From: Entomortierella parvispora E1425
Taxonomy: Eukaryota; Fungi; Mortierellomycota
NCBI GenBank assembly: GCA_020891255.1
Contig: BQFW01000007.1
Coordinates: 1,550,001 to 1,614,000, forward strand
Direction: 5' to 3'
DNA: 64,000 nt
Positions 7,005-41,639 of this stretch are shown here, one piece after another. A program made the position numbers and the translations under genes. Below the pieces are notes generated by a model. The model searched no databases. It had not been told where the DNA came from and was given only the letters and a program-made list of their open reading frames with translations. The stretch's first letter is position 1, and every line of letters begins with the position of its first letter.

Positions 7005-7495
7005 AAGAGAGGGACAATCGCCTTTGCTTTTTATACAATACACAACCAAAAAGGGAGCCTTGTCATTGGCACTTCCCTGGCTCAAGAGAATGAAAAAAAC
7101 CACGATCGAGACCTGTGGAGCAGATGGACCCGCTTTTGGTGCTTGCTCCCCTTTTTTGCTTCGCTTCTTCGTGTCACGTCGCAGAGCGGAGTCGGACGAA
7201 TGGAGCAAAAAAGTGATTGAAAAAACAGATGAATGAGCTGTTGCCCATTCCACATTCCCAATCCTTCACAGTCTGCACAGCCAGCAGGACAAGGCGCGGG
7301 TCCTATGTGTTGCCAGTCTGGCTCTGGACACCACCGCTCCATCGCGTGCACTTTTAACTTTTGCATTTTGGAGGCAAAGGAGGCAAAGGATGAGTTTTTT
7401 CTCTTTTTTTTTTTTTTTTTTTTGCTCCAAACGGAGTTCTTTGTTCATAAATTTATTAGCTGTTCTCCTCATCATGACCCTGAGGAGATCAATAA

Positions 7496-9308
7496 TTAAA
7501 AAAAGCCTCGGTTCACACCCGAGGATGACAATGAGGTCAAGTTGCTCAATTGAGGATTCGACTGCGAACGCAGGGAGGAGATGCGCTGTTCTTCGTGTGC
7601 AAGCTGTGCCATCCTGTGCTGCTGAACCTTGAGCATTTGCTGGGCCGCCAAGAGTTGATCTGAATAGAGAGTTCCGGCGTTTGTCATCCTGTGCAATAAA
7701 GAGATTAAAAAAAGTCGACGGTCAAAAAAAGTCTCTGGAGCAATGGAGGCAATCATGGACATCAAAGATTGATGCAGAAGAAGAAAAAACTCCCCTTCCT
7801 CCCAACTTACGTTCCCTGAACGGCCTTTGTCAAAATCTTCATGGGTCCTGCAATGGCGCTTGGGATATGAGCTACTGGAGCAGCAGGTTCCTGATGGATA
7901 ATGGCGTTTGCTCGCATTGTGACTCTGAGGATTTTGCCTGTGAACAAAGAGATGAAAAAATTAGTCTACAAGACCAAAAGCTGTTGTTCTCCTAGAGTCC
8001 ACATTCCTCCTAGTGATCGATTACATACCGTTATCTGCCTTCTTTCCATTGAGATTCTCGATAGCAGCCAAACCAGCAGCTTTCCTGGCGTAGGTGACCT
8101 GAGAAAATCCATGCGTGCAGACACATGACTTGATTTCTCCAAACCTTGAGCAAACGTACTATAATGTAGGGAACATAGTGGTTAAGAAATGGCTCGGATA
8201 GGGCTTGAAAGTACCATCCGTATACAGGCAACGGCGGAAAATTCTCACCTTGACATCGTCTGCTGTGGTCTCTGGGTCCAAGTTCTCGATCTCAACAGTG
8301 ACAGGGCCACTCTCGCCTCTAAATGCCACGTTCGTTCCTGGAGCAGAGCCTCTGATTGCAATTGGTGTATCTCCCATGTCGACATCCATATCCTCATCCT
8401 GCACCAACACGGGTGTTTGTGCCTTTGTGGTCAATTGAATTCGGGGTGAGGACTCTCGGCGTGCATTGCGATCAGAGGGACCGTTTGCATTCCTTTGACT
8501 ATTGCTACCATGGCCGTGGTTGTTGTTGCTGCTGCTACCATGACGGTTACTCAAAGATCCATTTTGATTTCCGTGAGCTGAGCGACGATCCGCAAAAACA
8601 TCATCCTGGCGTCTATCGTTGTGTCGTCCTCCTGAATAGGACACAGGCTCAGGGTTTCGTGGGCCTGTTGGGATTCGCTCGTTGCGAGTATGAAGGGAGG
8701 TGAGCGAGGCTGGGGCCCTGGGGTCTTTCCTGACCTGTTGGGTAGTAACGAGTCGAACAGGTTTGGAGGTCAAGGGTCCAGATGCCTGTCTTTGCTGCTG
8801 CTGTTGTTGCTGCGCTCCTGCCTTCAGTCCTGCTTTATAGTTGGTGGTATACAATTTCAGGGTGCCCTTTGGCTTTGCAATGTATCCCGCCGTAAAGATC
8901 TCTTTCACAGGTGCCTTTGCTGCTTGATACGACGCTGTGAACAGGGCAGTTTCCTTCTTGGCAGTTGTGGGCTTCTAACAACAAATCAGAAAAAAAAAAA
9001 AAAAAAAAGCCGGCGGCATGAGATGTTAGGACATCCCAATAAACGAGCAAAGGAGAAGGATGCTATCTTCGAGATGGGTCGTATCGATCGCCCTTTCTTA
9101 CTGCATAAGGCGAGTTGGGTTTGGAGGTCCTGATGGCCCGTTCGGTACGAATGGCAGCTCTGGATTTGACGCCTCCAGCAACTTTTTTAGGAATGGTGTT
9201 CTTGGTGGACTTTGCAGCCGAGGCGCCCTTTGCGGAAGAGGTGGCCTTCTTCTTCTCCTGCTTTTGCATCTTGATGATGTCGTCCAGGCTCTGGTCGATG
9301 CGATTCAT
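7496..9308 (-). CDS. RRM-containing mRNA export adaptor-like protein (Yra1/ALYREF/POLDIP3-like), multi-exon
   Basis: N-terminus MNRIDQSLDDIIK resembles the UAP56/Sub2-binding motif. The RRM is split by introns: VTVEIENLDPETTADDVK|..SRFGEIKSC..GFSQVTYARKAAGLAAIENLNGKKADN|GKILRV. The last exon ends ...GVNRGFF* at 7496. Confidence 0.75.
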
Positions 9309-10543
9309 GGCAGTGGCGAGGATTATTGAGTGTTGTTTGTTGCTGTTGTTTGTTACTATTTCGGATGCAACTCTGTAGAAATAAGATCGAGAAAAGGAAC
9401 GGCGGATGAGAGGGGGAAGGATGAAAAGAAAAGAGGGGAGAGGAGAGAAGAAGGGAAAAAAAAAAAAAAAAAAAGTGAAGGGAGGGAAATCAAGAGATTT
9501 GATTCTGATTAGGAAACATTGCTCGCACAGGACCGTGAACCAACCAGCGTCGTCGCAAGGTCTATGTACCAAGAGCAATGCTCTCTTTTCAACTTACCAA
9601 CTGGGTCAATGGCAACTGTGCGACAGGGATCGAGAGTGAGAGCGGGAGGGGGGGGGCAGGGAGCAAAGGAAGGAGAGGAAGAACAAGGAGGAGGATGACC
9701 AAGAATCACCCTTGACTCCTCTTGCTCCTTCCTTCCTTCCCTCCTTCACTCACACCCCTATCCCCTCGCGTCCTTGCCGTCCCTCGTCCCTGTCTGCCAA
9801 CTTGTCTTCATTTCTCTTGGTCGTTTTGTGTGTCCTTAAGGGTGCGACATCGACAGATCACGTGGTCCTCGCATCAACTGTTCGTCTCGCTCGCACTCGC
9901 AGTTGTTTCTAGGGTTTGTGTTCACGCGTCCTTTGATGCCAATCTGCCCGCTGCTGTCCTCGTTCGCTCTCTTGCAGATGGCAACAGCGTGAACAAACAA
10001 CAACAATTGCGCGAGTCTCTGTCTGCCAAGGTATCGGTCGCTCAGTCAGCAGGAGAACAGGCAGGCACAGGCCAAGACAGACGAAAAAAAGTCAGGTGCT
10101 TCTTTCCTCTTATTGCATGCAAGCACATCACAGGCAGGCTGCCATTCATTCATTGTTCCATTGTCAACCCACCCTTGTTTCCTTTTTCTCTTCTTCTCTC
10201 TTTGTTCATTCACATTCGCCGTCCCCATCCCCTTCCTCATTCCCCCCCACTTCATCAACACAACCATACCCACCACGTAAGCACCCTTGCCTGTGTCCCT
10301 TGCTGCAGCATAGACGCGAGCTTTGCTTGGCCCTACCTTGCGAACGTGGCACGTCCTCCGGCCCATGAAAAAAGTGCGCAACCCTTTGCTTTCCACTTCT
10401 TTTGCTCCCTTGTCCTCCTTTCGAGCCCTCTGTATAATTACCTCGGACCTCGCTGCTATTTTCGTCCCTTTTTGTCCCTTTCCCGTTCCCCACAACTTTC
10501 CCACCAGACACCTCTCTGCCTTGCCTGCCTCCTTGCGACCAGA

Positions 10544-12555
10544 ATGTCCGCCAAAGGCACCCACCCCAGCACTGGTCTGCGGCCGTCTTTCAAACGATCC
10601 CAGCTGCCTGCACAGACACCACTTCCACAACAACAACAACAACAGCAGCAGCATTCACATCTCTCTCCACAACCTCCACAGCTGCATCCGCAGCCACAGC
10701 CACAGCAGCAGCAGCAACGTCAACTGAACAACCCTCGGCAACACAGTCCCTTCTCCTTTGATGCAGATGACTATCTGATCGGTCCTCTCGGTTTTGGCTT
10801 TGCCGAAAGCAAACCTGCCAGTGCGAGTGGCAGTGGAAGTAACAGCAGCAGCAACAGCAGTAGCTACCATCCAAAGTCGACAGCGAGTGTACCTTCTTCC
10901 TCCACACACCCACCCGCCAAAACAGAGAGGACGGAGAAACGCTCGAGTGGCGGCATCTCTTCAACCCCAGCCACGGGTACCACGAGGACACCCTTTGTGT
11001 ACAACAACCCCCTGGCAAATGATGACTCTCATCCGGCGCAGCCTTACCTGGTGGATTTCGGTCACTCTGCTGGCTCCTTCAGCAACGGCAACAACAGCAC
11101 CCGGACCAGCAGAAGCAGCCTTTCGAGTAGCAATAGCAGTATAGCAACCGAGCAGGTGAAAAAGACACCCGCACCAGCGCCTGTCCCCACGCCTGTGCCT
11201 GCGCCTGCACCGCTTGTACCGGTAGCCTCTGTTCGAAAGACGTCGGTGGCTGCCCCGCTACCACCGCCACCATTGCACAAAGATGCGTCATCCTTGGGTC
11301 ATTTCGACGACTTTTTTAGCCCAACCCTTGGAACATGGACGGCACCAGCTTCAAAGCCGACGGCGAGGACGGCACAGATTCCTGACAAGGCCGAACAGCG
11401 ACAGCAGCAACAGCAACAGCAACAACCACAACAGCAACAGCAGCAACAGCAGCCGCAAAAGCTGCAGCATCAGTACCAGCACCAGCAATTGCCAGCCCAT
11501 CAGCATCAGCAGCCATATCAAGTCCAACGCCAGCAGAGCATCAATGACAGCTCACTAGACTTTTTTAGCTCTCTAGACTATCATGCTCCACCGAAATCAT
11601 CTTCATCCACCTCGGCATTCAAAGCGCCTTCCCAGGTTCCTCCATCTTCTACTGCCCCACGATCCTTTACTCAGCCTCCCTCCCCCTCGACAGATTCAGT
11701 CAATGAACGACCCTCGAATGTTTCCTCGATGATGCCGTCATTCGATTTTTCATCCGGGCCTAGCAAGACATCCACCCCTTCGCAACGACGCACCTTCCCA
11801 GACCTTGTGAATGCAACTACTTTTTCGCCGACAGTGAGCACCTCCTCGTTCCCCGTGGACCCGACCAGGAGCGGTACGTCATCGACTAGTCGGACATCCC
11901 CTGAGCCATCAGCATTCACTTTGTCGTCTGGATCCGGCCAAAGACACTCCACAAGCAAGTCCTCCAGCTCAAAGTCATCGAGCGTGCGCACTTCACCTGC
12001 CTTGACGCCCAGTGTAACTCCGTCGCTTGCACCACCCGCTCGTGCTGCGCCCAAAGCACCAGCGCGGATTTTGCAGTCACATCCTCACCCACATCCGACG
12101 CCACCAATCAAATCATCATCATCATCACTGGCGTCGTCTTCGTCGTCGGTTTCTTCCTCTTCATCCCAGAGCCGCAGCGACCCGCTGGCATTGTCGCAGA
12201 GGGAAATTGCGGTCCCCCGTAAAAGCTCGTCTCAGTCAACTACGCCATCGCCGTCTCCTGTCCCACCCGTCCCTCCACAGACCGCAAGACGACAGCAAGC
12301 TGCCAGCCCACTTCCGCCACCTCCGCCTCCACCGCCTCCAACACCTCCACCTTATATGCCCTCGCCTGCTGCTTCTCATTCCAGCATCCCAACATCACCG
12401 TGGCAGGATAGTGACGATGAGGACGACATTGATGTGGACTTTTATCGGGCAGCCCTCCCTCCAATGCTATCAACTCTTCCTGCCTTAGCTCCTGTCGATA
12501 GAATCGACAAATCGTCTCTACCTACCTTAACTGCGCCTGACCTTCAGCCGAGGCC

Positions 12556-12603
<48 letters not shown>

Positions 12604-13684
12604 GCAACAACAGCAACAGCAACAACAGCAACAACAGCAACAACAACAGCAGCAGCCGCAACCGCAACCGCAACATAACCAGCAGAAGCAGAAGCAGAAG
12701 CAGCATGGCCACCAATCGAGCGAGATTAAGACACGGCCCGAACCATTGGGAAAGAAGGAGACGCTGTCTAGGGCCGTGTCACCGCCCTTGTCACCCACAG
12801 GCTCTTCTTCCGGCCAGGTGCTCATGACTGGATACCCTCCACCTCCACCATCTATTCTCTATGCTGACGGTCAAATCACAGTGAGCTCGCTTCACCTGAC
12901 CATTCACTCGTTTTACTTTCCATTGAACAAGCCCGTTACTATTCCATTGCTGTCGATTACGGAAATGGACTCTTTGCCTCTGGAAGGCACGGGAAATGGC
13001 AGCGGTCTATCGAGCTGGCTCAAGTACAAGAACTGGGGTATTGCCTCTCTGTCAGATATATGGTGGGCTCGGGATCAGCGACCTAGTGAAGGAGCGTCCC
13101 TTGGAGGACCATCACTGGCAATGAAAGGAGCTACTGGATTTGAGCCACTGCGACACGTGGTTGTCCGGGTCGAAGGTGAATGGCTTCGAAAAGGGTTTGG
13201 CGTTGAGAGAGAGGAGGGTGTACAGGTGCTGAAAGAAGCCTGGAAGAACGTCAAGGAAAGTGAGCTTGGCCTTCGCCCGCTGAGACCTGCTGCTCACGTC
13301 AACCCCATGGGAGATGATGACGACGAAGACTTGTTAAATGTCGATGACTTTGCAACAGTCGGCTCAAAGAGCAACAACGGAGGATCAGAGAAGCGACGAT
13401 GGCTCCATTATCAGAATACTTGGACATCCTACCCTTTTGCGAATGATTCTCAGTACAATTCGCAAACAGCAAATCAACAGCGTCGCGTGGGAACCCTTGG
13501 AGGTGGCGTTTCTACCTCTTTTTTCTCAGGAGTTGCGGCCTCGTCCAAAGCGCCGAGATACCCCCGAAGCACTCATCCATCATCGTTGACTGCAACTGCT
13601 GGCAGTGGTCATCTTCAGGATGAGAGTTGTGGAGACGATCCCTTATTTATAGATAATGACCTGAATGTCCACGAGACAATTTGA
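10544..13684 (+). CDS. Intronless S/P/Q-rich low-complexity protein (1046 aa) with a C-terminal PH-like globular domain
   Basis: Long ORF; likely start MSAKGTHP at 10544; several poly-Q and poly-S tracts; ordered-looking segment ILYADGQITVSSLHLTIHSFYFPLNKPVTIPLLSI...WLKYKNWGIASLSDIWWARD. Confidence 0.75.
12556..12662 (+). repeat. CAA/CAG trinucleotide repeat encoding a poly-Q tract of about 35 residues
   Basis: A pure (CAA)n run followed by mixed CAG/CAA, in frame within the 10544-13684 CDS. Confidence 0.95.
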
Positions 13685-16430: not shown

Positions 16431-17859
16431 ATGAACGCGGAAGCCCAGTTGAAGATTCGCGGACTGATTCAGCTCGCCCTCGGCTACGTTGTCGAGCCTC
16501 AACCCCTCTCTGTGCCCGCCGTGCCCGAGACTTTGGACGGACTGATTGAACAATTGCAAAATGGATTGAACTTGAACGGATCTGAGCCTGTGGTGGCTCC
16601 CGTCCTCGCTCGCGAGTCTCAGGAAGAAGTCTGGGATGGTGAATCCTTTGGAAATCGCCTTGGTAAGTGCAGTTGGCATCCATGGCCTTTGCCAGAGATA
16701 GAGCTGCGGCAAACCCCTCCTCCGTCCTTTTTTTTTTTTTTTTTTTTCTCTTCCAAAAGAACTGCGGCTGCCTCTCTGACTTCTCTCCCTTCAATTTTTT
16801 TCCCCCCCACACAAATTAGCTGGATTGGGAAAGCTGGTAGCAAATGATGTGACCAAGGTCTCTTTGGCTTGCAAGCCCCCCGCGGAGTCCAAGACTGTCA
16901 TTGGTATGGTGGAAGCCCTCGGAGAGACTTGTTTCCGCCTTGCAGGATTTGTGGACTCGATCCCCGTCAAGGTTGCAGGACAGACATACAAGCGCGAGGT
17001 TCAGATTCTGTCCAACAACATCTTTGAGGCCGTCGCAGGACTTTTGAACGCGTTCTTGGAGCAACCCGACGAGAGAGTGTTGCAACTTCAAAACAAGAAT
17101 GCGGCCTTGAAGGGTGTTTCTCAAGGATTGAGCAGAAACAACCAAGGAGCGTCCTCGGAAAGCGGATCGGGAGCCAACAAGGACTTTTATTTGATCAAGA
17201 CGGGTATTGTCTGGGAGGCTTGCGAGATTTTCGAGAAGGCGAGTCGGTCCAACCGGGAGGCTGTGGCCAAGAAGTGGGGCGACATGATGTCCACGATGGA
17301 GGATGCCATTGCAGAGGTCAAGGAGATGATTGATTCCAACGATGAAAAGGATGAGCTCAAGGGGGATGACGATGACGAGGATGACAGCGGCAACGAGAGC
17401 GATGACAGCTGGAACGACGATGAAAAGATGACAGAGGAGGAGAAGCAGTTGAGCATTCAGGCCAACTCTCATTTGAAGTTGACACGGTTGTTGCTCAAGA
17501 AGTTGCAGCAAAGGTGTCTTGATACCCAGCAAGTTGCCAAGATTGTGATCCCTTCGGCAAACTCGCAACGCTCGGACGTGACACTCCAGCCTTCAGATCT
17601 GGCCAGGATGTGGGATCAGCTGTACGAGGCTGCTCAGGGCATTGTGGCGTTGGCCGATGAGATTGCTACTTCACTCTACAGTCCCCAGGATCAGGCAGTG
17701 TTGATGACGCTTTTGAGACAGTTGAGCAGGAAGAACCACGACTGCATCTTGGTGGGCCGATTGTTTGTCAAGGGTCAGGCTGATCAAGAGCAGTGGATGG
17801 ATATGTGCGAGGCCCAGTCGAAAAAGATTTTGGATGCAATTGTCCTTTTGCAGTCGTAA
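16431..17859 (+). CDS. Cyclin-D1-binding protein / GCIP-like protein, 2 exons
   Basis: Exons 16431-16662 and 16820-17859 are in frame. A helical protein with a central acidic tract (MEDAIAEVKEMIDSNDEKDE..DDSWNDDEKMTEEEK), typical of the GCIP/CCNDBP1 family. Confidence 0.7.
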
Positions 17860-18639
17860 GATCGATAGACCTTTTTTTATTTGTAGTTATTTTGTTGCAT
17901 ATCCCTCCCTCCCTCCCTCCTCCCCCATCAGAATTGTATAAAAGTTGCATGTTGTCCGAACACGAATCAGAGAAGCGCCACCAATTTTTGTGTGCAGTGG
18001 AATTACATATCACCTAGAGAAAGGGAGTGACATATGACAATCATAATGCAGTAGGGCAAAGGGGGATCAAAAGGTCCGAACGGATTAAAAAAAGACGCGA
18101 CTTTTGAGCAATTGAGGGTGCGGGTGAGAAACAACAAGGAACGAAAACAAGTCGCAAGACTCACGCCACTTGTTCGGATCTGTTGAATTGAGTTGAGGAA
18201 CAGGACAGGTACAGCAGGATGCATTTCATATAGAGTGAAGGAGCAAGGGAGAAAGAGGGAATAGACGCCACAAGGTGCCGGATGTTTCGCATGGGTGGGC
18301 ACAGATCAGAGACGATATCTCGGACGATGGACCAAAAGCAAGCGAACCGAGGGGGAGAAGGAGGGGCGGGCATCAGAACGAATGTCTTTGATCCACACAC
18401 AGACCGATTGGAGTGCAGCCCAGCGAGGCAGGGAGAGAACGAGAGCAGTGGCCTGATTTTTTTTTGTTGCCCTTCCCACCCAGAGGGGACTGCTTCTTCA
18501 TTCCGCGCACCGACGGTCTGATTTTGAGTTTGAAAATATAAGGTGATGCCTCGCCGGTGCCCTGAACGCTTCTTTGCTTGTTCCTTGTCTTTTTGCCATA
18601 GCTGATCACCTTCTTTTGTGCCCATCTCTCTTTCCTTCT

Positions 18640-18698
18640 CTCTCATTCTCTCATTCTCTCATTCTCTCATTCTCTCATTCTCTCATTCTCTCATTCAT
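18640..18698 (+). repeat. (TCTCATTC)n tandem repeat upstream of ERG1
   Basis: About 6 consecutive copies of an 8-bp unit are directly visible. Confidence 0.85.
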
Positions 18699-18763
18699 TC
18701 CCCTCATCACTCCTTCTCTGCCTCTCCTTGTCCCCTTCTCTCTCCTAAAGTTATATCCACACA

Positions 18764-20894
18764 ATGCCCGGAAACGTATGTCGCTCCTCCCTTGCCACCA
18801 AAAAAAAAGAATACCTATCTATACCTCGGACCTGAATGGCACCACAACCTTTTGGTCATCATCTCCCATCGACCTCGCAATGAATGCCCCTCCTGCCTCT
18901 CCCCCCCAGTTGTGCCCTCCCCTGAAGATGCCTCTAGGAAACTATTCTCTCCCTGTCCGTTTTACTGACATGTACCGCCTCACTCTTTACACCCGATAGG
19001 CTCTTTCACCTTCCCTGGCAACCGTTCCTGTACCAGCAGCCGGATCGTCCTTTGATATCATTGTTGTAGGCGCAGGAGTCCTTGGCTCTGCCTTTGCCTC
19101 CACTTTTGGCAAACAGGGCAAGCGCATTCTTCTCCTCGGTGAGTCTCCCTCTGTCTCTTCATCTCCAGCGCCCTGAATTTTTTACGAGGAATTATCAACA
19201 TGACGAGGAAAAAAAAATGGCCTGATCTGTGCAGCCACCCTTTTTTTTATCGTTGCACAATGCGTTTGCTCAAAGTAAAGCAGTGATGAAATCTAACCCA
19301 TGTCTACGATTCCTCTTTATAGAGAGAGACTTGAGCGAGCCCGATCGTATTGTGGGAGAGCTTTTGCAGCCTGGAGGCGTCAAGGCTTTGAAGACCCTTG
19401 GGTTGGACCACTGTCTGGATGGAATCGATGCTATCCCCACCTATGGCTATGGAGTGATTCGTGGCTCGGAACATGTTCATATCCCTTATCTGATTGACCC
19501 CGATACTGGAAAGCAATACCAGGGCAAATCTTTCCACCACGGACGATTCATTCAAAACTTGAGAGCCGCTGCTGCTGCCACACCAAAGCAAGTGCCGACG
19601 GAGAAGGACCCTGATGCTGTTCATTGTGATCTTGAGATCCTCTTATCCTAATACGTTTTCTCTTCTCATTAGTGTTACAATTGTCGAGGCGACTGTGAAC
19701 GAGGTTCTTCGCGACGAAGATGGTGTCAGAGCCCAGGGCGTTTCATGCACACCCAAGAAAGATAGCACAGACTCAGAGTCATCATCCACCACTATCAACT
19801 ACAAGGCGCCACTCGTTGTCATCGCTGACGGATGCTTCTCAAAGTTCAGGAAACAATACATCGAAAAGCCTGTCGCTACCACCTCACACTTTGTTGGGTA
19901 AGGAATCTTGCGACTGCTGGGAGACAGGATAATGGCTTAGGAACAAGCAACCATTGCTGACAATGATTCTTATTATATGCACCTAGATTCATCATGAAGG
20001 ATGTCCAGCTGCCCTTCCCCAACCACGGACACGTCCTTCTCGCCAGCCCATCACCCATTCTCATGTACCAAATCTCCACCAGGGATACCCGCATTCTCGT
20101 TGATGTTCCAGGAAAGCTGCCTTCGGCCAGCTCAGGAGCTTTGAGATCTTATCTGGAAACGATTGTTCGACCCCAATTGCCCGAGCAGGTTCAAAAGGCC
20201 TTCATGACTGCGCTGGAGACGGAACGCTTGAGATCTATGCCCAACAGCTTCTTGCCACCTTCGACGAGCTCAGAGTTGGGTGTGATTCTGTTGGGAGATG
20301 CCATGAACATGAGACATCCCTTGACTGGAGGCGGAATGACTGTGGCCTTGAACGATGTGGTCTACTTGAGCGATTTCTTGAAGGGCGATGTGACCAAGGA
20401 CCAGGAGGAGACTATGGTCCAAATGGAGCTGTTCTTCTGGAAGAGAAAGGAGCTCAGTGGAGTCATCAATGTTCTTGCCCAGGCATTGTACTCATTATTC
20501 TCAGGAGCTGGTAAGTGTCCTATTGATCTTGTCGACTTTTCGCGTATCTTTTTTCATTTTTCAAATCCTTTTCGTTATTCTAACAAATGTGTACTTTTTT
20601 TTTCTTGGTCGGCCTATAGACGATAACTTGAGAGTGTTGCGCGATGGCTGCTTCAGCTATTTCAAGATGGGAGGCGATTGCGTGGAGGGACCCGTGGGAT
20701 TGCTGTCGGGCATTACGCGTCGCCGGGCGGTTCTTGTGTATCACTTTTACGCCGTGGCTTTGCATTCGATCTGGTTGATGTTCCATCAAGCCACTTGGGC
20801 CGAGGTGCCAGCAACATTCTTCAGGGCCTTTGCCGTGATGTGGACCGCCTGTGTGGTTTTGCTCCCAGTGATGTGGAGCGAGTGCAAGGCATAA
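18764..20894 (+). CDS. ERG1: Squalene epoxidase (squalene monooxygenase)
   Basis: FAD motif DIIVVGAGVLG; ERDLSEPDRIVGELLQPGG; FHHGRFIQNLR; GDAMNMRHPLTGGGMTVALND; NVLAQALY. A micro-exon MPGN (18764-18775) precedes an intron whose acceptor is at 18999. Confidence 0.95.
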
Positions 20895-21170
20895 AGCAGG
20901 AGGACTCTCCCCCATCGCCACAAGCACCCATTATTAGCCCGCCGTAGCAGCAGCAACCAAAGCAGCTACAACAACATAACGACAAAGGGGTGAAAGTCGT
21001 TGTATTTATATCCAGTTCATAAAATTTATTTGTTCGCATTCTATTGTTTGTTCGCCCTGAAGTTGTATATTTTGAATGGACATTTGCATAAAAGAAAAGG
21101 AAAGAATGCTATCCGAGGACAGTTGAGAGAAATGAAGGAAAGGGGAATTGTTTTGCCTCGTCTGAGACTA

Positions 21171-22976
21171 GAGACCATGCCAAAAACATCCATACCTCTG
21201 ATTTGAATGTCCGGTTTCATATGGATCTCCACCCCTTAATAAAAGTTATGACTTTTCGCGCACTCAAGGGGAGAAAGGGACGCCACTCAGCTCTCTGGAG
21301 ATGCAACTCCCATCTCTCTACCATGTCGGATCCTCGATTTAAACGGAATGCAGCACGACTGACTCGTAATGAATACTGCATTCTGGCGAACGTCCAAAGC
21401 TACTTGAATGGGACTGGGGCCTTCCACGAGCACCGTGGCAAAGTCACCGCCCGCAAGCGTCTTGCCCTCATAACTGGGATCGGTTCAGATACGGCGCGGA
21501 AAGCTATTCAGTTTTATAACGGCGTGGGGGAGGTTTCGGAGAAACGCATTGGTCGACCAAAACACATCATTGAGACTGACTTGGGCGCAGCCATTCGAGA
21601 ATTTGTGTTGGCATGCAACAAAGATGGAGTGCCTGTGACAACGAATCTAGTTTTGAAGGAGCTGCGGGAAAAACACGGTATCGTTTTCGCGAAGCGAACC
21701 TTGGTCCGTCGATTAAAACGGCTAGGTCTTCATTACGGCAAAGGAAGCAGGAGGAATATCCTCCATGACTCCCAAGCGGTGATCGACTATCGTGATGTTT
21801 ACATCGAGCGTCGCCTCTCGAATCTGAACCCCAAGGGTCTTCCAATTGTTCCTGAGGTGTTCCTTGATGAGTCATATTGTCATCTAGACCATCACAGTCT
21901 TCGGACATGGTTGCCTTCTGGAGGCTCTGTCAATGAGCGAGGACGAAAGCCAATGCTTGTCATTTTCGGTGCATTCGTGGTATTCCGAGTTGACAACAAG
22001 CTCAGGGCAGAGCTCGTCAAGAAAAAGCATCCTCATCTGGCCGGTCAAGGGTCAATTGCGTGGTCGAGAGGGTGGACGTGCCGCAGACAACGAGCTATGG
22101 AAGACTGTTCCTGATTTTGTCCGAGAGGCGGGTATTGCCCCTGACTACCATGACTACCACGGTAACTTTGATGCGGATCTGTTTGAGCGATTGTTTGAGG
22201 CTCTGTGCACAACACTCCATGAAGACTATGGGCCTTGTCACATTCACATGGATGGCGCCAAGTACCATGTCCGCGAAGAGAATCCAGTACCGAAAGCAAG
22301 CTCCTGTGTGAGAGATATCCATTCGTGGTTCGAAAAGAATGGCATAGAGCTACCAACAAATGACCGGGGCAAGATCAAGTCTAGACTCGAGCTTCTTGAG
22401 CACATCAAAGGTCTCAACATCCCCAAGACCTTTGCTTCATACCGAATTGCACACGAATACGGACACACCATTTGCAAGACACCTCCGTATCATTGCGAGC
22501 TACAGCCGATTGAAATGGTCTGGGGAATGGTCAAGAACCCAATTGCAGCCAATCCTAACTTGGACGAGACTGAGCTGTCACTGCGAAACCGCCTTTTGGG
22601 ACTCTTCGCTGGCATTCAGGAGTCACAGCTTATTGCTGTTTGGAAAAAGACTGTCCAGGTTGGGAGGGACTATCGGATTCTCTACGAAAGACGACTCGAA
22701 AACAATGAAAACTACAGTGAAAGTGACGATGATGACCGCGAATTTGATAGTGACACAGACAACAGTGAAATTTCTAGTGACGAGGAGGCATAGTATTTTC
22801 TATTTTTTTTCAGTACCATTGTTCTCAGTAGACATGACCCCAGTGAGTCCAGTCCATCATGGAACATCGTTTAGAGTCAATGAAGTTTTTAAAATCAGAA
22901 GAGAATAGAAAAAAAAAAGGCAGAGGGGTGTGAGAATTTAGGTTTTGTGAGGTATGGATATTTGTGGCAAGATCTC
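21171..22976 (+). mobile_element. IS630-Tc1-mariner superfamily DNA transposon with long DD86E spacing (Sailor-like)
   Basis: 28-bp TIRs at 21171-21198 (GAGACCATGCCAAAAACATCCATACCTC) and 22949-22976 match at 24/28 positions and are flanked by TA at 21169-21170 and 22977-22978; the element encloses a transposase. Confidence 0.9.
21323..22793 (+). pseudogene. DDE transposase with one frameshift near 22020
   Basis: N-terminal HTH-like region (RIGRPK..KRTLVRRLKRLG), then VFLDESY, HMDGAKYH and TPPYHCELQPIEMVW. The ORF is split between frames at gtcaagaaaaagcatc; removing one A restores LVKKSILIW. Confidence 0.85.
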
Positions 22977-31389: not shown

Positions 31390-32695
31390 GTTGATGTCAG
31401 TTGTTTGTTAAGCAGGGGAAGGGTGCTGGTGCAGGCAAGAAAAATATTGGAGAGTATGAAAAGCCAGGAAGAAGCAAAAAAACAGTGCTCTTTTTATGTA
31501 GTTTTTTTCTTTCGGTTCGAAAAGGACGTTCCTGTCCCCACTGCATGGAGGCGCTTTAGGTGACCTGACAGTCTTCGGCCTGCAACGCAGTCCGAAAACA
31601 AAGGCAGCCTCGTTCCCAACGGACATTTATGATTGTTTGAACAAATAAATTCTTGGCTGTTCAAGCACTGGATCCGTTGGGGCTGGAATGTTAGGTTGTC
31701 CCACTCAGGTAATAGGCAGACAGTAGCTTTCAGGATATTTGGACCCGTTGACAATTTCAGGGTATGCAAGGATACACCGACTGACCAGGGACACGACAAG
31801 CACTGTCAAAATACTCATGGCACCTGTCTTTGCTTCAAGGAGAAATAAGAGTGACGAAGGACAGACTCCAAGGCAGGAGGCCATTGGGGATAGGACGGTG
31901 CACTTTGTAAAGGTGCAACGTGGAGGCAGGCAAGTGTCTGTATGTTGATTTTAATTTAGAGGCCTCTGTTGGCGCTCGTGGTTGTCAACTGCCTGGTATC
32001 CATGTGTTCCTGTCCAGAACGAGGGGTATGAACAAGCCCAGATGATCCATTTCAAATGTGGCTCGCTACAGCAGCGCTTCCTCTCCTGCAAGTATCCATC
32101 CGTTCCAGGAATCAGTCAGTTGAACCAATACGACATTGCCGCAAAGACTCAAACTAGCAGTAAGGACCATGAGAGTTTCTGTTTAAAGAGGACTGAGTAT
32201 CGATTGTTGACGCGTCTCCCTAACTCTCCATTTTTTTTCAAAAGTTGCGACCATGGTATGGACAAAGATGGCTGACATGCCCACCAAATACTTTGGAGCC
32301 GCCTGTGCCGCTTCAGGTGATTCATTCATTATCTGGGGGGGGGGTACAGCATCAATTCTTCGGATATGATGGCGGTGACAGCTAATTGGGATGGCCCTGC
32401 CATTCTGCCAATATTTGGGCAATGAGTTACACCCCGACTTCTAAAACCATGACTGGAGGATCCGGTAAAGGCCTTTGAGTCTCTCTAGAAAAGAGCTCGA
32501 GGATTCCTGGCATTGTGCTCGTCTATGTCAGGCATGGTCATATCCTTCCATTTAGTATGAACAAACCAAGCAAGTATCAAAAAAGGTCGTTTTTATTGAT
32601 GCACATTTGTGTATGACGAACTCCTCTATCACGACGAAAGGTTGCACCGCTTGCCATTTCTTTGTTTTTGCTCCACGCGCCACCAAATCTGGTCT

Positions 32696-32704
32696 CTGAA
32701 TCAG
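32696..32704. repeat. Left 9-bp target-site duplication CTGAATCAG
   Basis: An identical direct copy lies at 40301-40309, immediately outside the right TIR. Confidence 0.9.
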
Positions 32705-33725
32705 GAAGCTCTGAACCCAGCCCCTCTTTGCTCACTCCTTCACTTCAGAGGGGCTGGGCGCAAATCTCACCCTTTCCTATGGATGACCCAAAATAATTTT
32801 TTCGTCCAAAAAAGGAAAAAAAATTCTCTGATAAATAGTGTAATTTAAAAACTTTAAATAAATTCACTCTAATAATAATAAAATAGTGAGAGTAATGCCA
32901 GCCATGCAGCCATGCCATCGCTCGTCGCCCGGCTTGAATGGGGTTAATTTCTTCCATTTTTTCATTTTCAATGCCACCACTTTCTTTCATAAACCCCGCG
33001 TTCCGATCTTGCATTCAGCTCCTGCCACCTCTTCTTTATACCCTTCATCTGATTAAATGACAAAGATGGCAAGCAAAAGACCAATCGAGCAGAGGTGAGG
33101 AGACGCGTCTCGGGTGTCCATGATGCTCAGAGTCGCCCACGCGTCCATCTGCTCTATTTTTCTTCATCTCTTCATATTTTCTGTTGTAGTCATGATGCTC
33201 TTAGCAAATCTGATCAAGATATCCCGGGAACGCCGAGAAGATCGCGTAGCACCAAGGTGAGTAGCTTGATGTGGTGCCTGGTGGCCTCTTCCTGGTGTGG
33301 CCTCTTCTAACTCTGTGATTTACAATAGGGTGAGGGACGATTTCGTCTTGATTCCCCAGGTGCTCCTCCGCGAACCCCGCAAACAACACAAACCCCACGA
33401 GCACCACGAGCACCACGAACTCCACGAACCCCGCGCACCTCACAAACCTTACAAACGCCAAGATTCATACAGTCACCAATTGTGGCCAACCAAGTATGAA
33501 AAAAATCGTTAAAAAATATGTGCTGCTCGCGTTTTCTTTTCTAACAGATGTATCCACCTCCTCCCATTCATATCGATTAGGGAACTACCAATGGTTCTGG
33601 TGCTACCGATATGGCCCAACCTTTACCCTTTGTCATGGAGGCACAGGCTCTTTCTCCGACTTCTCAGGCTGCGTACATTGGAGGATCAACGCAATTCAAC
33701 ATTGGAAAAAATTCGACGCCACCCA
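32705..33725 (+). repeat. Left terminal inverted repeat (1021 bp)
   Basis: Reverse complement of 39280-40300. Mirrored ORFs in the track are identical and their coordinates always sum to 73005. Identity stops after ...GACGCCACCCA. Confidence 0.95.
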
Positions 33726-35973
33726 TCACTGGAGAAGAACCGCCACGACTCAATGTTGGAGAGAATTTGACGCGATCCAATGTTGGAGAAGAATCGCCGC
33801 GACCCAGCAATGCGTCGGAGGAGTTGACGTTCGATCCTTTCTGTGATAACACTGATGGAGAACCAATCATGACGTGGGGTTCTGATAACTATTATGTAAG
33901 AACCCCTTTGAGGAAAAAGTGGTCATCGATGCAGCCATCGTCATCAGCTCCTTCTTCACCCGCCAATTCTGTCGGCTCTCCGTTGCAGTCATTCTCGTCA
34001 CCATCAAATGCGGTTCTTAGCCAACCTTTACCGTTTATACAAAAAAGCGATGAACGCGAAGACGAGAGTGATGTCCAGGTAAGTCGAGTTTAATTATGAA
34101 ATGGCGATGTTCTGGACTTGCATTAACTCTCACATTAAAATGCATATATGTCTGTAATCTTCATACTGCAGGATCCATTATGTAAAGAGGCTATTCAAGC
34201 TTGCCGAAAGCGTTTTCATCACTCACCAAAGGAGGAGCAGCTTCGTGTTGTCAAACATATATACAACAAGCAGGATTGCTTACTGCTTGCGCCCTGCGGG
34301 TGGGGAAAAACACTTGTATTTTCTCTGCCAATGGTGATGTGGAAGGACAAGATTACGGTCGTCATTTCGCCGTTGATTGCCCTGATGCAGGATCAGATAA
34401 AGGTATGCCAGCATACAATATACCAGTCTAACAGGTATACTTTTTTCTAACATATCGCGCAATGCGACCCTGTGTTAATACTCTAGAAACTCAAAGAAAA
34501 GGATGTCACTTGTTTGCTACTCTCGACCTACAACGGCAATCGAGTTAACGACAGTGACATTAAATTAGTTAAGGAGGGACATTACAGAGCTGTGTTCATG
34601 TCGCCAGAAGTCATTTTCGGGAAAGGATCTACTGCATGCAAGGTTCAGGACCTTTGGAACAATAAGTATTGGAAAAGTCAACTATGCTCCATCGTCGTAG
34701 ATGAAGTCCACTGTGTAGATAAATGGAAAGATTTTCGGCCGTATTATTCGCAAATTGGATCATTGCGTGGTAAGGTACCTGGGGTGCCGATCGTAGGCCT
34801 GACTGCAACCCTCCCACCCGATTCGCTCCAGGAAATCAAGAATAGCGTCTTTCTCGCCTCGTCCACCGTTCATGTCATTCGTGTGGATGACATTCGTGAT
34901 AACATCCAGCTCGAAGTTCATACCTTTTCACTAAGGAATCGAGTCAGACAACTGGCGAAGTTGCTGGACAATACAAAGACGATTGTCTATTTTGACAGCA
35001 TCGCACTTCTCAGAGATGTACAGGACAAGTTAAGGCCATTGAGGCCTGATCTGCGAATGGACGCATTTTTCTCAACCCGCCTTAGTTCTTCCAAGGATAA
35101 AGTCCTGCTCAAGTTCATTAATAGCGAGATTGATGTCCTGTTGGCTACTGATGCCTGCGGCATGGGATGCGATATCTCAGATGTTATCACTGTGTTCCAA
35201 TATGAGTAAGTTGAAACGTAACTAAGGTTGGACAATGCGGATGAAATGAGAGACGATCTTACTTACTTCAAGATATTTTCAATGATATGAAGTCTGCCTC
35301 ACGATTTGACGAGTCTTGTGCAGAGGTTCGGTCGAGCAGCGAGGGGTCCTGGAACTAAAGGCTTTGGGATCCTCTTGGCGCCTCCAACTACCAGCAGGAA
35401 ATACAACAAGAGACCTGACATCTTAAATTTCGTTGCCCCCCAATTGACAAGGACAAGGACAAGGAAAAGGACAAGGAAAAGGACAAGGACAACAGTCGGA
35501 GGAAATGTCGGTGGCATGTGGTGGATGAATATCTAGGGAACAAAATATCCTCTCGTACCAAATGTTGTGATGTATGTCTCGGTGAGTCTTGTCGCCGCAA
35601 GACGACCGAACTTACTGGTCAAATTGGGCCCGAACTGACTATACCAAAGGGGAAGAGCGCGGACAAAGATCAGGATGTAGGGAGGAACAGGTTATTGGAG
35701 TGGAGGAAGAACGAGTGCAAAAAATGGACAGGAGAAGAAGTGTCCTTCGTGGACTTCGAGCTTTGCGTTTTGCCCGATAAAGTACTCGCAAGGTTGTGCT
35801 ACAAGCTCTTTGCGGCCACCACTACTGAAATGGTGAGGTTGATAGCTGACAGCTGTGATTTTGTGCCAGTGGATTGCGATCATTTTGAAATGATCGCTGA
35901 GGTTGTGGCGAAAGCCCTGGGCGAGATAGAAAGTACGAAAAATGATCAAAATTCCTTGGTAGTCGAAGAATAG
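33057..35973 (+). CDS. RecQ-like SF2 helicase of the AcademH element (about 800 aa if repaired; one apparent frameshift near 35430)
   Basis: APCGWGKT (I), SPLIAL (Ia), DEVH (II), TAT (III), ATDACGMGCD (V), QRFGRAAR (VI), and a Zn-binding CR..Y.G..CCDVC. Predicted exons 33057-33094, 33190-33256, 33329-33493, 33581-34078, 34172-34402, 34487-35205, 35293-35973. Confidence 0.88.
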
Positions 35974-36139
35974 CCCATCAATTGACCGAGCCAAGATGAC
36001 AAGGAGATGGAGTCACTGCTTGCATCTGATGACCCTGCACAACCAAACATTTACAGCCGGCCGGGCCATTTAACATCGCACGAGCCCAGGTCCCATTCAT
36101 TCATTCTTCTTTAGTTAGTATTATTATTGTCATAAAATA

Positions 36140-39100
36140 TCATTCAGCTACAACATGGTCGTTGGCCTCGACTTCCTCCATATCCACAGTATCGTAGCTA
36201 TCGCTTTTTCTGAGAAAACATGCTATAGCACTCTCTGCCATTTTGTGCGCGCCAACAGTTTGAAGGTCAACTACCACGGATGGAGAAGGCCGAGTGTCTT
36301 GCTTGGATGCCCAAAGGATTCCACAGAACTGGAGATTGTCTCTGACAAGCTCAACATCCTCTTTCGTGGATGGTTTTTTGTGAGCAGTGCTGTTGTACTT
36401 GGTTTCTATCTCCCGTTCGAAATTACGTGCAATGGTTTGAAATATCTCGACGTTTGTTGAGATTTGTTCGCGAAGATAGTCCCAGCTTGCGTTTGGCCCT
36501 TTCGCTGCATGAGTGGCTTTGAGGAGGAAGTTGATGATTTCTTGGTACATGTCCGTTGGCATCCATGCTTGAGGAATGCCTTTAGGGTTCACCAGCATGC
36601 TTGAAAGGACCCTGTGTTCCCATTCACGCGTCCACAGGTGGCGCATGCCGTGGAGAAATCGTAGTAGCTCAAGGGCATATTTGGAATTGCCTCCGCCGTG
36701 CATCATCAATGCCACGGTTGGTAGCACACATCTTATCCGCCCAAGATCGCCAGCCTTAATAGCAGCAGAGAGTTCGATGAAAACGATCATGTCTCGGAGG
36801 AAGAGAAGAGCATTGATATCTGCTGGAGTGCAGGGCCGGCCATTGAGCAAGGGATTGGCATGCTGCAGACTAGCTATGGCGTAAATGACAAGATCAACGA
36901 ATCTTGTCATGTCAGACTCCACTGAGGTATGAAGATCTTCCCAGAGTACCATTGACATTGCGTCGAAAACAATCTTCAGCAGTTCACTGGTTGGCTTGTA
37001 CTCCGGTTTATCCGTGTTAAAGCCTTTACTGGCCAATAGGGAAATGAATGATGCAAGTGAGCCTGGGGTATTGGCATCGGCGCCAAGATGTGTCTTGTAG
37101 ATCGTGGAGCAAAGTGTCATTTGGAGATGGAAGAGCTGAAACGTAGGATGTACCCAACCAAGACTGCCGAATGGATCCGACTCAACCATGCGGTGTACCT
37201 TGAGAGATAAAAGTCTAGAGACAGTCATCTGATCACCGGCCACTATGATGTCCCTGGTGGTCTTGCTGAACCATTCATCGCTTAAGCCGAGATCTATCTT
37301 TGTTATGTTTTCCAGCACTGCGAGATTTCCGGCAATAGTCGACTCATCGATCTTCATGGTTGGCAATGGAAAAGTTTTCGTCTTAACAACCTTCAGTACG
37401 TCAATGGCCGGCATGGGAATCACGCAAACACTGGGTGATCGAGGCAAAAACTGCGAAATGGCAGTCGACAGATGTGTGCGGCAGGCAGCCCTAGTCATGG
37501 TGCGGTCGGTGCTTGTGGGGAAAAAAATGCTGGCGCTTGGCTCTGGCCTGTCCACTCTGAAGCAAACCATTGGGGATGATCGAGGTATTTCAGCACTCCT
37601 GGAGCTCCCGAGATTTGAGCTGTCGGGAATCAGAATCACGGTAGCAGCTGTGCCGTTGTCGAACGTGTCTCTTTTTCCTACTCTCTGGTGATGGTGCCTT
37701 GTGGCAATGTTGATGTTGTCGTATACAATGTAAAAGTCGTTGTTGAGGACTGCCACCTTCACCCTCTCCTGTGCGTCTTTGGTCAAGGCCTTCAATGCCC
37801 TGTGAATCTGATCATATGACACGCAAAGTCCAAGAGCCGACAAAGTCTCTAAAACTCGTCTGGGAGCTCCCAGGCAGTGAAGATAGATGCCCATTACCAT
37901 CTGAAAAGCATTGCATTGCTGGGATCTCAAGAACATGAGCATAGCAGAGATGCAGCCACGAACAGAGCTGGGTTTTCGACCGCGCCTGCGAGCAGGTGTA
38001 GCGCTTCCCACAGTTTCTTCATCATTGTTGCCGATGTTGTCACTGCCGTTGTTGACGGTGTTATCGCCGTTGCTGTCGATGTCGTTGTCGCCGCTATTGT
38101 CGCTGTTGTCGCTGTTGCTCTCGGTGTCGTTCTCACTGTCGTTGCCGTTGTTGTTGCCTTCGTTTACTCTGGTGCTACCATCGCCACTGTTCGTACCATT
38201 TCCCTTGCTAAGCATGCCGTCCAAAAGTCGTGTCAAAAAAGAAGCTTCGCCGGCGTAAGAGTCGAGAAACCCGTTCCTGAGGATCTTATCGATATTTTCC
38301 TCCGACATTCTATTGTGCGGGAATCGGTAGGCTGGGTGTGGGCCATCGTCACCTACGACGCCGTTCTTGAGGCGATCAAGCTCCCGTTTAGTCCTTGAGA
38401 CAACGACGTCTACAGCGCTGTTCACAAATGGGGCATCCCATTCTTTGATCTTGCGTAACTTTTGGCTCCAAATTTTGATAACGCGACGAGGACCGTCTTT
38501 GTGATAGAATTGATGAGTCCAGCGCTTGATGTTTTCATCTTGAGAGTTAAACAGCTTCTCGAAGAAGGCGGGAAGTGAAAGCTGTTGTTCCCTGATGTAG
38601 TTAAGAATCATTGCAACTTTGTGGGTAGAGGAATGCTAAAAAGAAAAATAATTGTTAGACGCCTGTGGGAGTGACATATTGCTGGTTTCTTTGGACAACC
38701 GGTCTTCACATACATGCGGCTTCCTTGTTGATCCGGGCATTCGATCCTCTCCATTGGTCGCTCTGAGTGTGGGGGAATCGGGCATGCACATCTATACGTA
38801 ATTCGTAATTCACTTGAGAGGTAATTCATAAATTACGATAAGGATGTTTTCGAAACCATGTGCTGAATTTACCTGCAGTGTCGATGAGTTGAACTGCTCC
38901 TCCATGTCGGCCGTTAAAGTCCTAATCCTATCACTGAATTTCACTGCATGTTAGAAATTTGCGTAAACCTGGGGGCAACTAAAGTTGCGACAGGGTAGGC
39001 AGGTTGGGGTATCTCATGCTTACGCGAACTGAGGGGTGCTCAGATTCCTAGATCGTCGCGAGTTTTTTCTTGTGGGGGTCCTCATGTAATCGTTCCCAGA

Positions 39101-39948
39101 AACCCATATCATCGGCGTCTCTGTTCGATTACTTCCTAATCTCCGAAGCCAGAATGGGCTATCGAATGGCTCTCCATCAGTGTTGTCACAGAAAGGATCG
39201 AGCAGAGACTCCTCTGACGCATGCTTGGGTCGCGGTGATTCATCTCCAATGCTGGGTCGCGGCGACTCTTTTCCAATGTTGGGTGGCGTCGAATTTTTTC
39301 CAATGTTGAATTGCGTTGATCCTCCAATGTACGCAGCCTGAGAAGTCGGAGAAAGAGCCTGTGCCTCCATGACAAAGGGTAAAGGTTGGGCCATATCGGT
39401 AGCACCAGAACCATTGGTAGTTCCCTAATCGATATGAATGGGAGGAGGTGGATACATCTGTTAGAAAAGAAAACGCGAGCAGCACATATTTTTTAACGAT
39501 TTTTTTCATACTTGGTTGGCCACAATTGGTGACTGTATGAATCTTGGCGTTTGTAAGGTTTGTGAGGTGCGCGGGGTTCGTGGAGTTCGTGGTGCTCGTG
39601 GTGCTCGTGGGGTTTGTGTTGTTTGCGGGGTTCGCGGAGGAGCACCTGGGGAATCAAGACGAAATCGTCCCTCACCCTATTGTAAATCACAGAGTTAGAA
39701 GAGGCCACACCAGGAAGAGGCCACCAGGCACCACATCAAGCTACTCACCTTGGTGCTACGCGATCTTCTCGGCGTTCCCGGGATATCTTGATCAGATTTG
39801 CTAAGAGCATCATGACTACAACAGAAAATATGAAGAGATGAAGAAAAATAGAGCAGATGGACGCGTGGGCGACTCTGAGCATCATGGACACCCGAGACGC
39901 GTCTCCTCACCTCTGCTCGATTGGTCTTTTGCTTGCCATCTTTGTCAT
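36140..39948 (-). CDS. Academ-type (DUF6589-like) putative DDE transposase, predicted 1101 aa, 7 exons
   Basis: 823-aa core ORF with IVYDNINI, AGDQMTVSRL, LFHLQM and PTDMYQEIIN (candidate D, D, E residues). Predicted exons 39948-39911, 39815-39749, 39676-39512, 39424-39024, 38933-38873, 38791-38714 and 38635-36140 all join in frame at GT..AG sites. Confidence 0.85.
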
Positions 39949-40300
39949 TTAATCAGATGAAGGGTATAAAGAAGAGGTGGCAGGAGCTGAATGCAAGATC
40001 GGAACGCGGGGTTTATGAAAGAAAGTGGTGGCATTGAAAATGAAAAAATGGAAGAAATTAACCCCATTCAAGCCGGGCGACGAGCGATGGCATGGCTGCA
40101 TGGCTGGCATTACTCTCACTATTTTATTATTATTAGAGTGAATTTATTTAAAGTTTTTAAATTACACTATTTATCAGAGAATTTTTTTTCCTTTTTTGGA
40201 CGAAAAAATTATTTTGGGTCATCCATAGGAAAGGGTGAGATTTGCGCCCAGCCCCTCTGAAGTGAAGGAGTGAGCAAAGAGGGGCTGGGTTCAGAGCTTC
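39280..40300 (-). repeat. Right terminal inverted repeat (1021 bp)
   Basis: Reverse complement of 32705-33725; ends ...GGGTTCAGAGCTTC. Confidence 0.95.
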
Positions 40301-40309
40301 CTGAATCAG
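40301..40309. repeat. Right 9-bp target-site duplication CTGAATCAG
   Basis: Direct repeat of 32696-32704. Confidence 0.9.
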
Positions 40310-41639
40310 GGACACATGTCGAACATGGGATCAGTTCTCGAACATGCATCAGGTTCTGCCTCTTACATTCTTGCATTCTTCCATTCTTCCATTTATGCAT
40401 TCCTGATTCACTAGAAGAGACTCAATCGAATCCCATATACTACATTTGAAAACTGGCCACCTGGTCCATTCCTGATCCAGTGAAGCACGCGTGCTCCGTT
40501 CTGTGCAACTTCTCCATGCTATATCTCTTTCTGTCCTCAGGTCCTGGTCCTGCGGTAACACTCCGATCCGAATCTCCTGCTCCTGCAATCAGTGGGCGAA
40601 TCGCTCTCAGTCCAAGGTCTACGGTACAAAGACAAAAACGCGCTTTTCAGTCAAGTTGCTTCCAGTGCTTCAATGTCCAGAGAAAAAACGCGTTCCAGGG
40701 ACGCGTCTTTCGTCCACTCTCTCGCAGACGCATGCTCCCCTCCATCCTATGGTCACGTTCCTCCCTGCCAAGCCTCCTCCGAGTCCAGAGTCAAGTTTTT
40801 TTTACAGGCAAACACGTTATCCTGGATCGAGAGGCCCGCCATTGGCCGCCTCCAAGCGCAAAGGCCTTCTCCCGAGTCATTTTTTTTCCTATGTGAGTTT
40901 GAAGGTGCTGGCTTTTCAAGGGAATGCATCCAGACAGGACGTGAATGTAAATGAGCCAGATGATTCCTCGCCCCCGATTGCACTCATTCCACCATTCACC
41001 ACGCATGGCTGCGACCATTCCTCGCCGAGAATCGAAAGAGAGAAGTTGGCTTACAAAGTGCGTCATGGTCGTCATACTCGGGACTTTTTGCCTTTTTGGG
41101 AACGCCGGGGGGACCTTACAGGCCAACATGGGATTAGTGCATGCTTGTGAAGGGGGACATGGTGTAGAAGGGGTGTAGAAGGGGTGTAGGAGGCGTGTAG
41201 GAAAGGAATGGAACGGAAGGTGAAGGAAGTAGTTGAGAAAGAAGGGGAAAAGCGTTTGCATGGGATTTATACGACAGGGAAAAAAAAGGAAAATTGAACC
41301 GGGTCCGTCTCATTTCGTACAAATACAAGCCCGCGCCCCGTTTCATTTCTTGCTTCTTCATCCAACTCTTCTCTCTCTTCAGAGCACCCTTCACAAGCAA
41401 ACGCTTCCTTCACAAGCACAAAGCACCACTGCAAGGCCCTTCCTCCTCTACCTGCCTGCTGCCATGTCGGTCGTCCACTGCCAAGAACTCAAGGCTCCCT
41501 GCCTCGGTCCTCATCGCCCTCCTCGGTGATCAAGCCACTTTCAAGACCGCCCCTTGCCTTCAAGACCTCTGGTACCCTTCATCCTTGGCAACCATGAGCT
41601 ACTTGTCCCTGACCTGGCCCTCCTTCTGCGACGACGCTT

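Follow-up and report, generated by a model that had tools for sequence, protein, structure and literature searches.

In a 64,000-nucleotide stretch of the genome of the soil fungus Entomortierella parvispora E1425 (contig BQFW01000007.1, positions 1,550,001 to 1,614,000; hereafter the window, numbered from its first letter), we identified an AcademH-type DNA transposon that carries two genes, each of which has its start codon and first exons within a terminal inverted repeat (TIR). Most probably this is a recently active, multi-copy cut-and-paste transposon of the AcademH type, in which a helicase and a transposase both start from TIR-borne exons and the repeats would double as their promoter and leader. 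The coordinates of the element and its parts are collected in Table 1.

A repeat search of the window returned inverted arms at 32692-33780 and 39225-40313, and base-by-base comparison of 32705-33725 with 40300-39280 revealed perfect identity over 1,021 bp. Inward of this block the identity falls abruptly to about 75%, and the indels found there are multiples of three and in frame. The ATG at 33057 has its mirror image in the one at 39948. The left one is followed by introns at 33095-33189, 33257-33328 and 33494-33580 and the right one by their mirror introns at 39816-39910, 39677-39748 and 39425-39511, all with GT and AG at their ends, and no upstream ATG is present in the 48-nt leader stretch before the TIR ATG. 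Translation of the RNA-defined frames gave an N-terminal prefix of 138 aa that is identical in the predicted helicase and the predicted transposase, followed in both proteins by a diverged yet related block of about 70 residues. A preliminary description of this DNA, made from the letters alone, had proposed that each TIR carries an ATG, three GT..AG introns and about 138 codons, and our translation reproduced its exact peptide. Its further proposal that these exons run in frame into two different enzymes was also borne out: those of the left TIR continue through the joint 34078/34172 into the helicase, and those of the right TIR continue via 38933-38873, 38791-38714 and 38635-36140 into the transposase, in one frame of 1,101 aa that is open from 39948 to the stop at 36140. 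The probability that the unique stretches stay open by chance was about 0.004 on the helicase side and about 0.001 on the transposase side.

The splicing pattern was examined in assembled contigs from two runs of one sample that contain the element, one with DNA behaviour (X1) and the other with RNA behaviour (X2), evidently an RNA-seq run of this strain. X2 was read as RNA because its contigs skip nine intron intervals, three TIR-borne and six further ones, each with GT..AG ends (for the minus-strand gene these read CT..AC on the plus strand) at the predicted sites. An X2 contig of 5,102 nt starts at about 33696 by record arithmetic, 30 nt inside the left TIR, passes the joints 34078/34172, 34402/34487 and 35205/35293, runs through both genes and the joints 38635/38714, 38791/38873 and 38933/39024, and stops 30 nt within the right TIR, at 39309. 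TIR positions 39280-39996 are represented by another X2 contig (463 nt), which has the joints 39424/39512, 39676/39749 and 39815/39911, and splicing of the introns further downstream follows the sense of the gene concerned. Thus, the introns in the TIR are removed, RNA extends across the TIR/unique boundary at each end, and the transcript reaches at least 48 nt 5′ of the ATG. All nine joints occurred in the X2 contigs and none of the nine in the X1 DNA contigs, which, with the open-frame probabilities, agrees with the earlier argument that the junctions do not keep phase by chance. Two ATGs in the unique part, at 34148 and 38611, had been named as starts that would speak against TIR-borne exons; the former sits within the spliced intron 34079-34171, and the mRNA has in-frame exons upstream of the latter. 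RNA depth was 111.9 in the TIR and 78.9 in the unique part, a ratio of 1.42, compared with 1,627 and 839 (1.94 times) in the DNA contigs; the RNA ratio is weak evidence for a contribution of both genes. Stranded paired-end RNA-seq of the same strain (DRA013164) served as AUGUSTUS hints in the genome paper (PMC8759367), and both genes start at the TIR ATG in the public E. parvispora models obtained by that method. An RNA-only run search over 6 kb listed nothing, and four other runs labelled with this species (X3, X4, X9 and X10) were set aside as they lacked the element and gave low-complexity matches only.

The products of the two genes were characterized by Pfam and by structural comparison. 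The long minus-strand open reading frame (ORF) at 36140-38611 encodes a Pfam DUF6589 protein. Its AlphaFold model, built from 29 homologues, had a predicted local distance difference test score (pLDDT) of 74 and a predicted template modelling score (pTM) of 0.73, and its best structural matches were all DDE transposases, with Hermes at Z 11.4, the P element at Z 10 and Tn5 at 8.3, followed by ISCth4, Transib and RAG1. D298, D460 and E648 (ORF numbering) are invariant among the 29 homologues. On this model, the DUF6589 protein is predicted to be a transposase with an RNase H-like DDE catalytic core. It shows 100% identity to E. parvispora EMPS_07069 over the aligned part, which amounts to 79% of the ORF; the EMPS_07069 model has an odd, apparently wrong internal exon and a truncated C-terminus because of homopolymer errors in other genomic copies. 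The plus-strand exons generated hits on DEAD and Helicase_C in Pfam and thus form a separate helicase gene inside the element, and the nearest solved structures to the helicase core were WRN, BLM and RecQ helicases, at E values of about 1e-15. The window copy has one C too few in the C-run that ends at 35435, and this disrupts the helicase frame. This gap is probably an assembly error, because the extra C is present in Illumina DNA contigs, in RNA contigs and in one of the other genomic copies (L001). With the C restored, the predicted helicase has 799 aa, equal in length to the public model.

The element ends with GAAGCTC...GAGCTTC, and 9-bp target duplications accompany the same termini at four independent insertions, namely the window copy (CTGAATCAG), two further E. 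parvispora copies (TATGAGTGC for L001 and AAGTTCTGT for L002) and an element of Podila verticillata (TCGAAAAGA). The DDE core, the separate helicase gene, the 9-bp duplications and the TIRs were all found in one element. AcademH elements are diagnosed by 9-10 bp target duplications together with a helicase (PMC10045372, PMC10799480); the TIRs, 9-bp duplications, DDE transposase and RecQ-like helicase together fit AcademH, while the only name that Pfam gives to the transposase domain is DUF6589. The Pfam scan found no MURA-type Mutator-like element (MULE) domain in the transposase, and the element was accordingly not assigned to Mutator/MULE.

The two further copies lie on contigs BQFW01000005 and BQFW01000009 and match the window copy with 99.96% identity. 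The three copies have different flanks, each with its own 9-bp duplication, and differ only by single-base homopolymer indels, which lie at window positions 35430-35435, 36656, 38771 and 33075. At two of the indel sites the Illumina DNA contig has the window's version, at a third that of the other copies, and the indels are probably nanopore assembly errors. The element is thus multi-copy and recently active. A single-copy depth of about 100 is expected from our own rough estimate from sequencing yield (PMC8759367), and the 839 seen in the DNA contig suggests a genome copy number of about eight. When the flanks were joined without the element, no obvious host ORF was restored at the insertion site.

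Table 1. Coordinates of the features of the AcademH-type element in the window
Feature	Position	Strand	Remarks
AcademH-type DNA transposon	32705-40300		7,596 bp; two convergent genes inside
Left target site duplication CTGAATCAG	32696..32704	.	9 bp; same 9-mer at 40301-40309
Left TIR	32705..33725	+	1,021 bp; terminal motif and upstream region; transcript start and ATG; exons 1-3; exon 4 up to its nt 145
Conserved 22-nt terminus GAAGCTCTGAACCCAGCCCCTC and 12-bp palindrome (CCCAGCCCCTCT...AGAGGGGCTGGG)	32705..32760	+	
5′ untranslated leader, minimum extent	33009..33056	+	Mirror of 39949-39996; RNA contig reaches 39996
Helicase exon 1 (TIR)	33057..33094	+	ATG 33057; mirror junction in RNA
Helicase exon 2 (TIR)	33190..33256	+	Conserved H..SDQ(D/E).P.TPRR.R motif
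Helicase exon 3 (TIR)	33329..33493	+	Pro/Thr/Arg-rich; 9-nt repeats
Helicase exon 4	33581..34078	+	Begins in TIR; crosses identity boundary 33725/33726 into helicase-specific sequence
27-nt tandem repeat (9-aa units)	33730..33806	+	At TIR identity boundary
Helicase exon 5	34172..34402	+	Start of DEAD domain (Pfam); RNA joints 34078/34172 and 34402/34487
Helicase exon 6	34487..35205	+	DEAH box, Helicase_C; RNA joint 35205/35293
Helicase exon 7	35293..35973	+	To stop codon; frame broken in window copy
Transposase last, main exon	36140..38635	-	DUF6589, predicted DDE-type fold; RNA joint 38635/38714
Transposase exon 6	38714..38791	-	RNA joints; open frame; peptide matches Podila homologue P0002
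Transposase exon 5	38873..38933	-	RNA joints
Transposase exon 4	39024..39424	-	Begins in right TIR; crosses 39280/39279; RNA contig 39024-39309, 30 nt into TIR
Transposase exon 3 (TIR)	39512..39676	-	RNA joints 39424/39512 and 39676/39749
Transposase exon 2 (TIR)	39749..39815	-	RNA
Transposase exon 1 (TIR)	39911..39948	-	ATG 39948; RNA joint 39815/39911; contig out to 39996
Right TIR	39280..40300	-	1,021 bp, perfect match to left TIR
Right target site duplication CTGAATCAG	40301..40309	.	9 bp

Related elements were fetched via transposase homologues. The layout, as predicted from homology, is conserved in related Mortierellaceae elements. The TIRs of P. verticillata (827 bp) and P. humilis (900 bp) are each 100% identical within the element and contain the start codon, at which the public 839-aa helicase model of P. 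humilis begins; the four exons, separated by introns of phases 2, 0 and 0, are found again in both Podila elements, with frames open on both gene sides. In Mortierella alpina the TIRs (666 bp, 98% identity) have decayed outer ends and the exon chain was read by eye only; the public transposase model starts within the TIR. A soil metagenome contig covers the helicase-side end only, with the same terminus and with exons 1 and 2 equal in length and phase. Linnemannia gamsii carries a short form, with a start codon in a 250-bp TIR and only the first 10 codons shared. Its TIRs (positions 1937-2186 and 7537-7786 of locus L005) differ by one mismatch, at position 116, and belong to a more distant family. 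A Mycena olivaceomarginata relative (locus L010, positions 7097-13649) has TIRs of about 160 bp, and its DUF6589 and helicase genes lie head-to-head in divergent orientation; therefore, TIR-borne exons seem to be a speciality of Mortierellaceae rather than a general AcademH trait. A look at other AcademH families for TIR-embedded exons, as advised in the preliminary description, showed this layout in Podila, the metagenome contig and, in short form, L. gamsii, and a different one in Mycena. Two candidates were rejected, a Rhodofomes locus without TIRs or helicase and an Actinomortierella contig without an inverted repeat. In M. alpina, a second helicase and DUF6589 pair (locus L004, positions 17805-22152) directly adjoins the first element, placing two AcademH-like elements side by side.

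Within each element the TIRs are identical or nearly so, and between species they are strongly diverged; therefore, some homogenizing process (concerted evolution) acts on them. The identity stops in the E. parvispora element exactly at the 27-nt tandem repeat, of which there are four units on the helicase side and three on the transposase side. The 22-nt terminus is identical in P. verticillata and P. humilis and differs by one base in the metagenome element; a metagenome scan with this terminus gave no matches. Just inward of it lies a 12-bp perfect palindrome with a 19-nt spacer (32716-32758, mirror 40247-40289), with a DNA fold of -13.8 kcal/mol (z -3.75). It is kept in the Podila and metagenome relatives, with a compensatory T/A swap in P. 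humilis, and may represent a pair of inverted binding sites or a hairpin. In a comparison of E. parvispora with P. verticillata, no TIR segment was better conserved than intron 1 (33095-33189), which had 60% identity against 38-57% for the other segments inside the terminal 60 nt; this hints at a regulatory element there. The motif NPFWVP was found on the helicase side in L. gamsii and on the transposase side in P. verticillata.

We propose that transcription proceeds inward from both ends, from the left to yield the 799-aa RecQ-like helicase and from the right to yield the 1,101-aa DDE transposase. The region upstream of the ATG in each TIR is presumably the promoter, in which case both enzymes would be expressed from the same sequence whatever the insertion site, and the duplication would co-express them. 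The preliminary description had likewise let one duplicated TIR promoter fire both genes inward; the spliced TIR RNA that crosses both boundaries agrees with this, and the promoter itself is deduced from its position. The fast-evolving leader most likely would give both enzymes one nuclear-import or phospho-regulatory signal through the small motifs KR(Q/P), TPR(K/R), PF(W/C) and (K/R)TPx(K/R); its TPRR and TPRK sequences presumably fit the minimal cyclin-dependent kinase (CDK) site pattern. The RNA contig runs without a break through the 166 bp (35974-36139) that separate the two stop codons. Therefore, the convergent transcripts abut or overlap, and could yield double-stranded RNA.

Several points weigh against expression of both enzymes from TIR-borne exons. 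The RNA evidence consists of unstranded assembled contigs, in which extra internal starts or retained introns would be invisible; X2 carries the tool label 'DNA?', its RNA nature being deduced from splicing only; RNA from the TIR is identical on both sides and hence not assignable to helicase or transposase; the N-termini of both enzymes are predictions from RNA-defined frames; the helicase frame of the window copy is broken as it stands; and the exon structures in other species come from homology and canonical splice sites, without RNA. If a single gene used the TIR start and the other were transcribed mainly from an internal promoter, the TIR link being a rare read-through or an assembly quirk, the non-assignable TIR reads, the RNA ratio of 1.42 instead of 2 and those public models in other species that begin one of the two genes in the unique part would be accommodated. 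We consider this improbable, since the RNA contig reaches exactly 30 nt (k-1) into the TIR at both ends, so that RNA 31-mers span both boundaries, the introns nearest the boundary in each unique part are spliced in the orientation expected, the ATG at 34148 is intronic, several families keep open frames on the helicase and the transposase side alike, and the E. parvispora models begin both genes in the TIR. An artefact of assembly or annotation as the source of the long identical repeats and the shared exons would be in keeping with a nanopore-based assembly that has homopolymer errors within the element itself, but is extremely unlikely in view of three copies at different loci with their own 9-bp duplications, an independent Illumina DNA contig with nearly doubled TIR depth, and the same structure in independent assemblies of other species.

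What the shared peptide does is a separate matter. The architecture may be real and the 138-aa peptide a tolerated, disordered passenger, with selection acting on the TIR in its roles as a transposon end, a promoter and a leader; with the first AUG inside the repeat, all that is required of the sequence downstream is that it keep frame. Such a passenger, which we hold possible with a likelihood well short of even, would explain why the Pfam scan detected no domain in the leader, why the leader is of low complexity, rich in Ser, Thr, Pro and Arg (Pro, Ser and Thr together about 34-36%) and built partly of 9-nt and 27-nt tandem repeats (the 9-nt repeat at 33371-33429 encodes the PRAPRTPRTP stretch of exon 3), why the two proteins share as little as 10 aa in L. 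gamsii but 138 aa in E. parvispora, and why no contrast between exons (49%) and introns (52%) was found at the nucleotide level between families, in a comparison with P. verticillata and the metagenome contig in which all values were near saturation. These same features weigh against a function of the leader. On the other side, several families have short motifs in common (KRQ/KRP in exon 1; in exon 2, TPRR/TPRK within H..SDQ(D/E).P.TPR(R/K).R), exon number and phases are conserved, PF(W/C) and (K/R)TPx(K/R) are retained in both proteins just past the identical TIR, outside the homogenized part, and recur across species, and the ratio of nonsynonymous to synonymous substitution rates (dN/dS) was about 0.45 when the two diverged copies of the common block in the E. 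parvispora element were compared over 68 codons. We also entertain, tentatively and with considerable doubt, that the leader is a working module, either a common nuclear-import or cell-cycle-gated signal or a handle joining helicase and transposase, kept identical by the transposition mechanism or by linked gene conversion that copies one TIR to the other. If it is a working module, coding sequence, promoter and transposon end would evolve as one concerted unit, and the TIR boundary could shift through the coding region to leave, by lineage, 10 to 138 shared residues.

Expression from TIR-borne exons would be a new layout for a two-gene transposon, with end repeats that serve as recombination sites, as promoters and as the first 138 codons of two enzymes. 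Gene finders and repeat maskers will mis-annotate such elements, and for all three of E. parvispora, P. verticillata and P. humilis the public models contain errors or gaps at the element. Deletion derivatives with both TIRs would retain two inward-firing promoters and open leaders. The perfect TIR identity beside about 25% divergence just inward offers a clean system for the homogenization of long TIRs, and, as almost nothing is known experimentally about AcademH, a young, expressed, multi-copy element with defined transcripts would provide an entry point.

Academ elements were reported in Mortierella genomes (PMC5751038) and AcademH in Mucoromycota (PMC10799480). The E. parvispora element resembles the AcademH lineage of Academ transposons (Kojima 2020, Mob DNA 11:15, as summarized in PMC10045372 and PMC10799480) in having a DDE-type transposase and a separate superfamily 2 (SF2) helicase gene between TIRs and target duplications within the range of 9-10 bp, and that lineage, too, is reported from fungi, Mucoromycota among them; the element differs in its 1-kb perfect TIRs, in which both genes have their start codon and first exons. 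In the literature searched, which did not extend to the founding AcademH paper, we found no account of such TIRs in AcademH, and on TIR-encoded or shared exons in general a precedent for promoters only, in MuDR/MULE, with no shared coding exons. The preliminary description, which knew of no report of this architecture, is borne out by these searches as regards the shared coding exons, which are the new part; the principle of a duplicated, inward-firing promoter is known from another superfamily. In maize MuDR, the convergent genes mudrA and mudrB have their promoters and transcription start sites in two TIRs of about 215 bp (PMC3440606; PMC3310237). The E. parvispora element likewise has two convergent genes, transcripts that cover the TIR from 48 nt 5′ of the ATG, and RNA over both boundaries. 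The target duplications of MuDR are also 9 bp. Its transposase belongs to another family, compared with DUF6589 as the only Pfam assignment here, and to our knowledge the MuDR TIRs provide promoter and leader without shared spliced coding exons, MURA and MURB having no common N-terminus. In En/Spm (CACTA), the transcripts for TnpA and TnpD have one promoter and the same 5′ exon in common; that is one alternatively spliced unit, whereas the E. parvispora element duplicates the 5′ part in inverted orientation for two convergent genes. Poxviruses and other large DNA viruses carry diploid genes in inverted terminal repeats that are kept identical by concerted evolution, and coding sequence inside long terminal inverted repeats is what the E. 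parvispora element has in common with them. Whole genes are duplicated in those viruses, whereas here the 5′ part alone is duplicated and fused to two enzymes.

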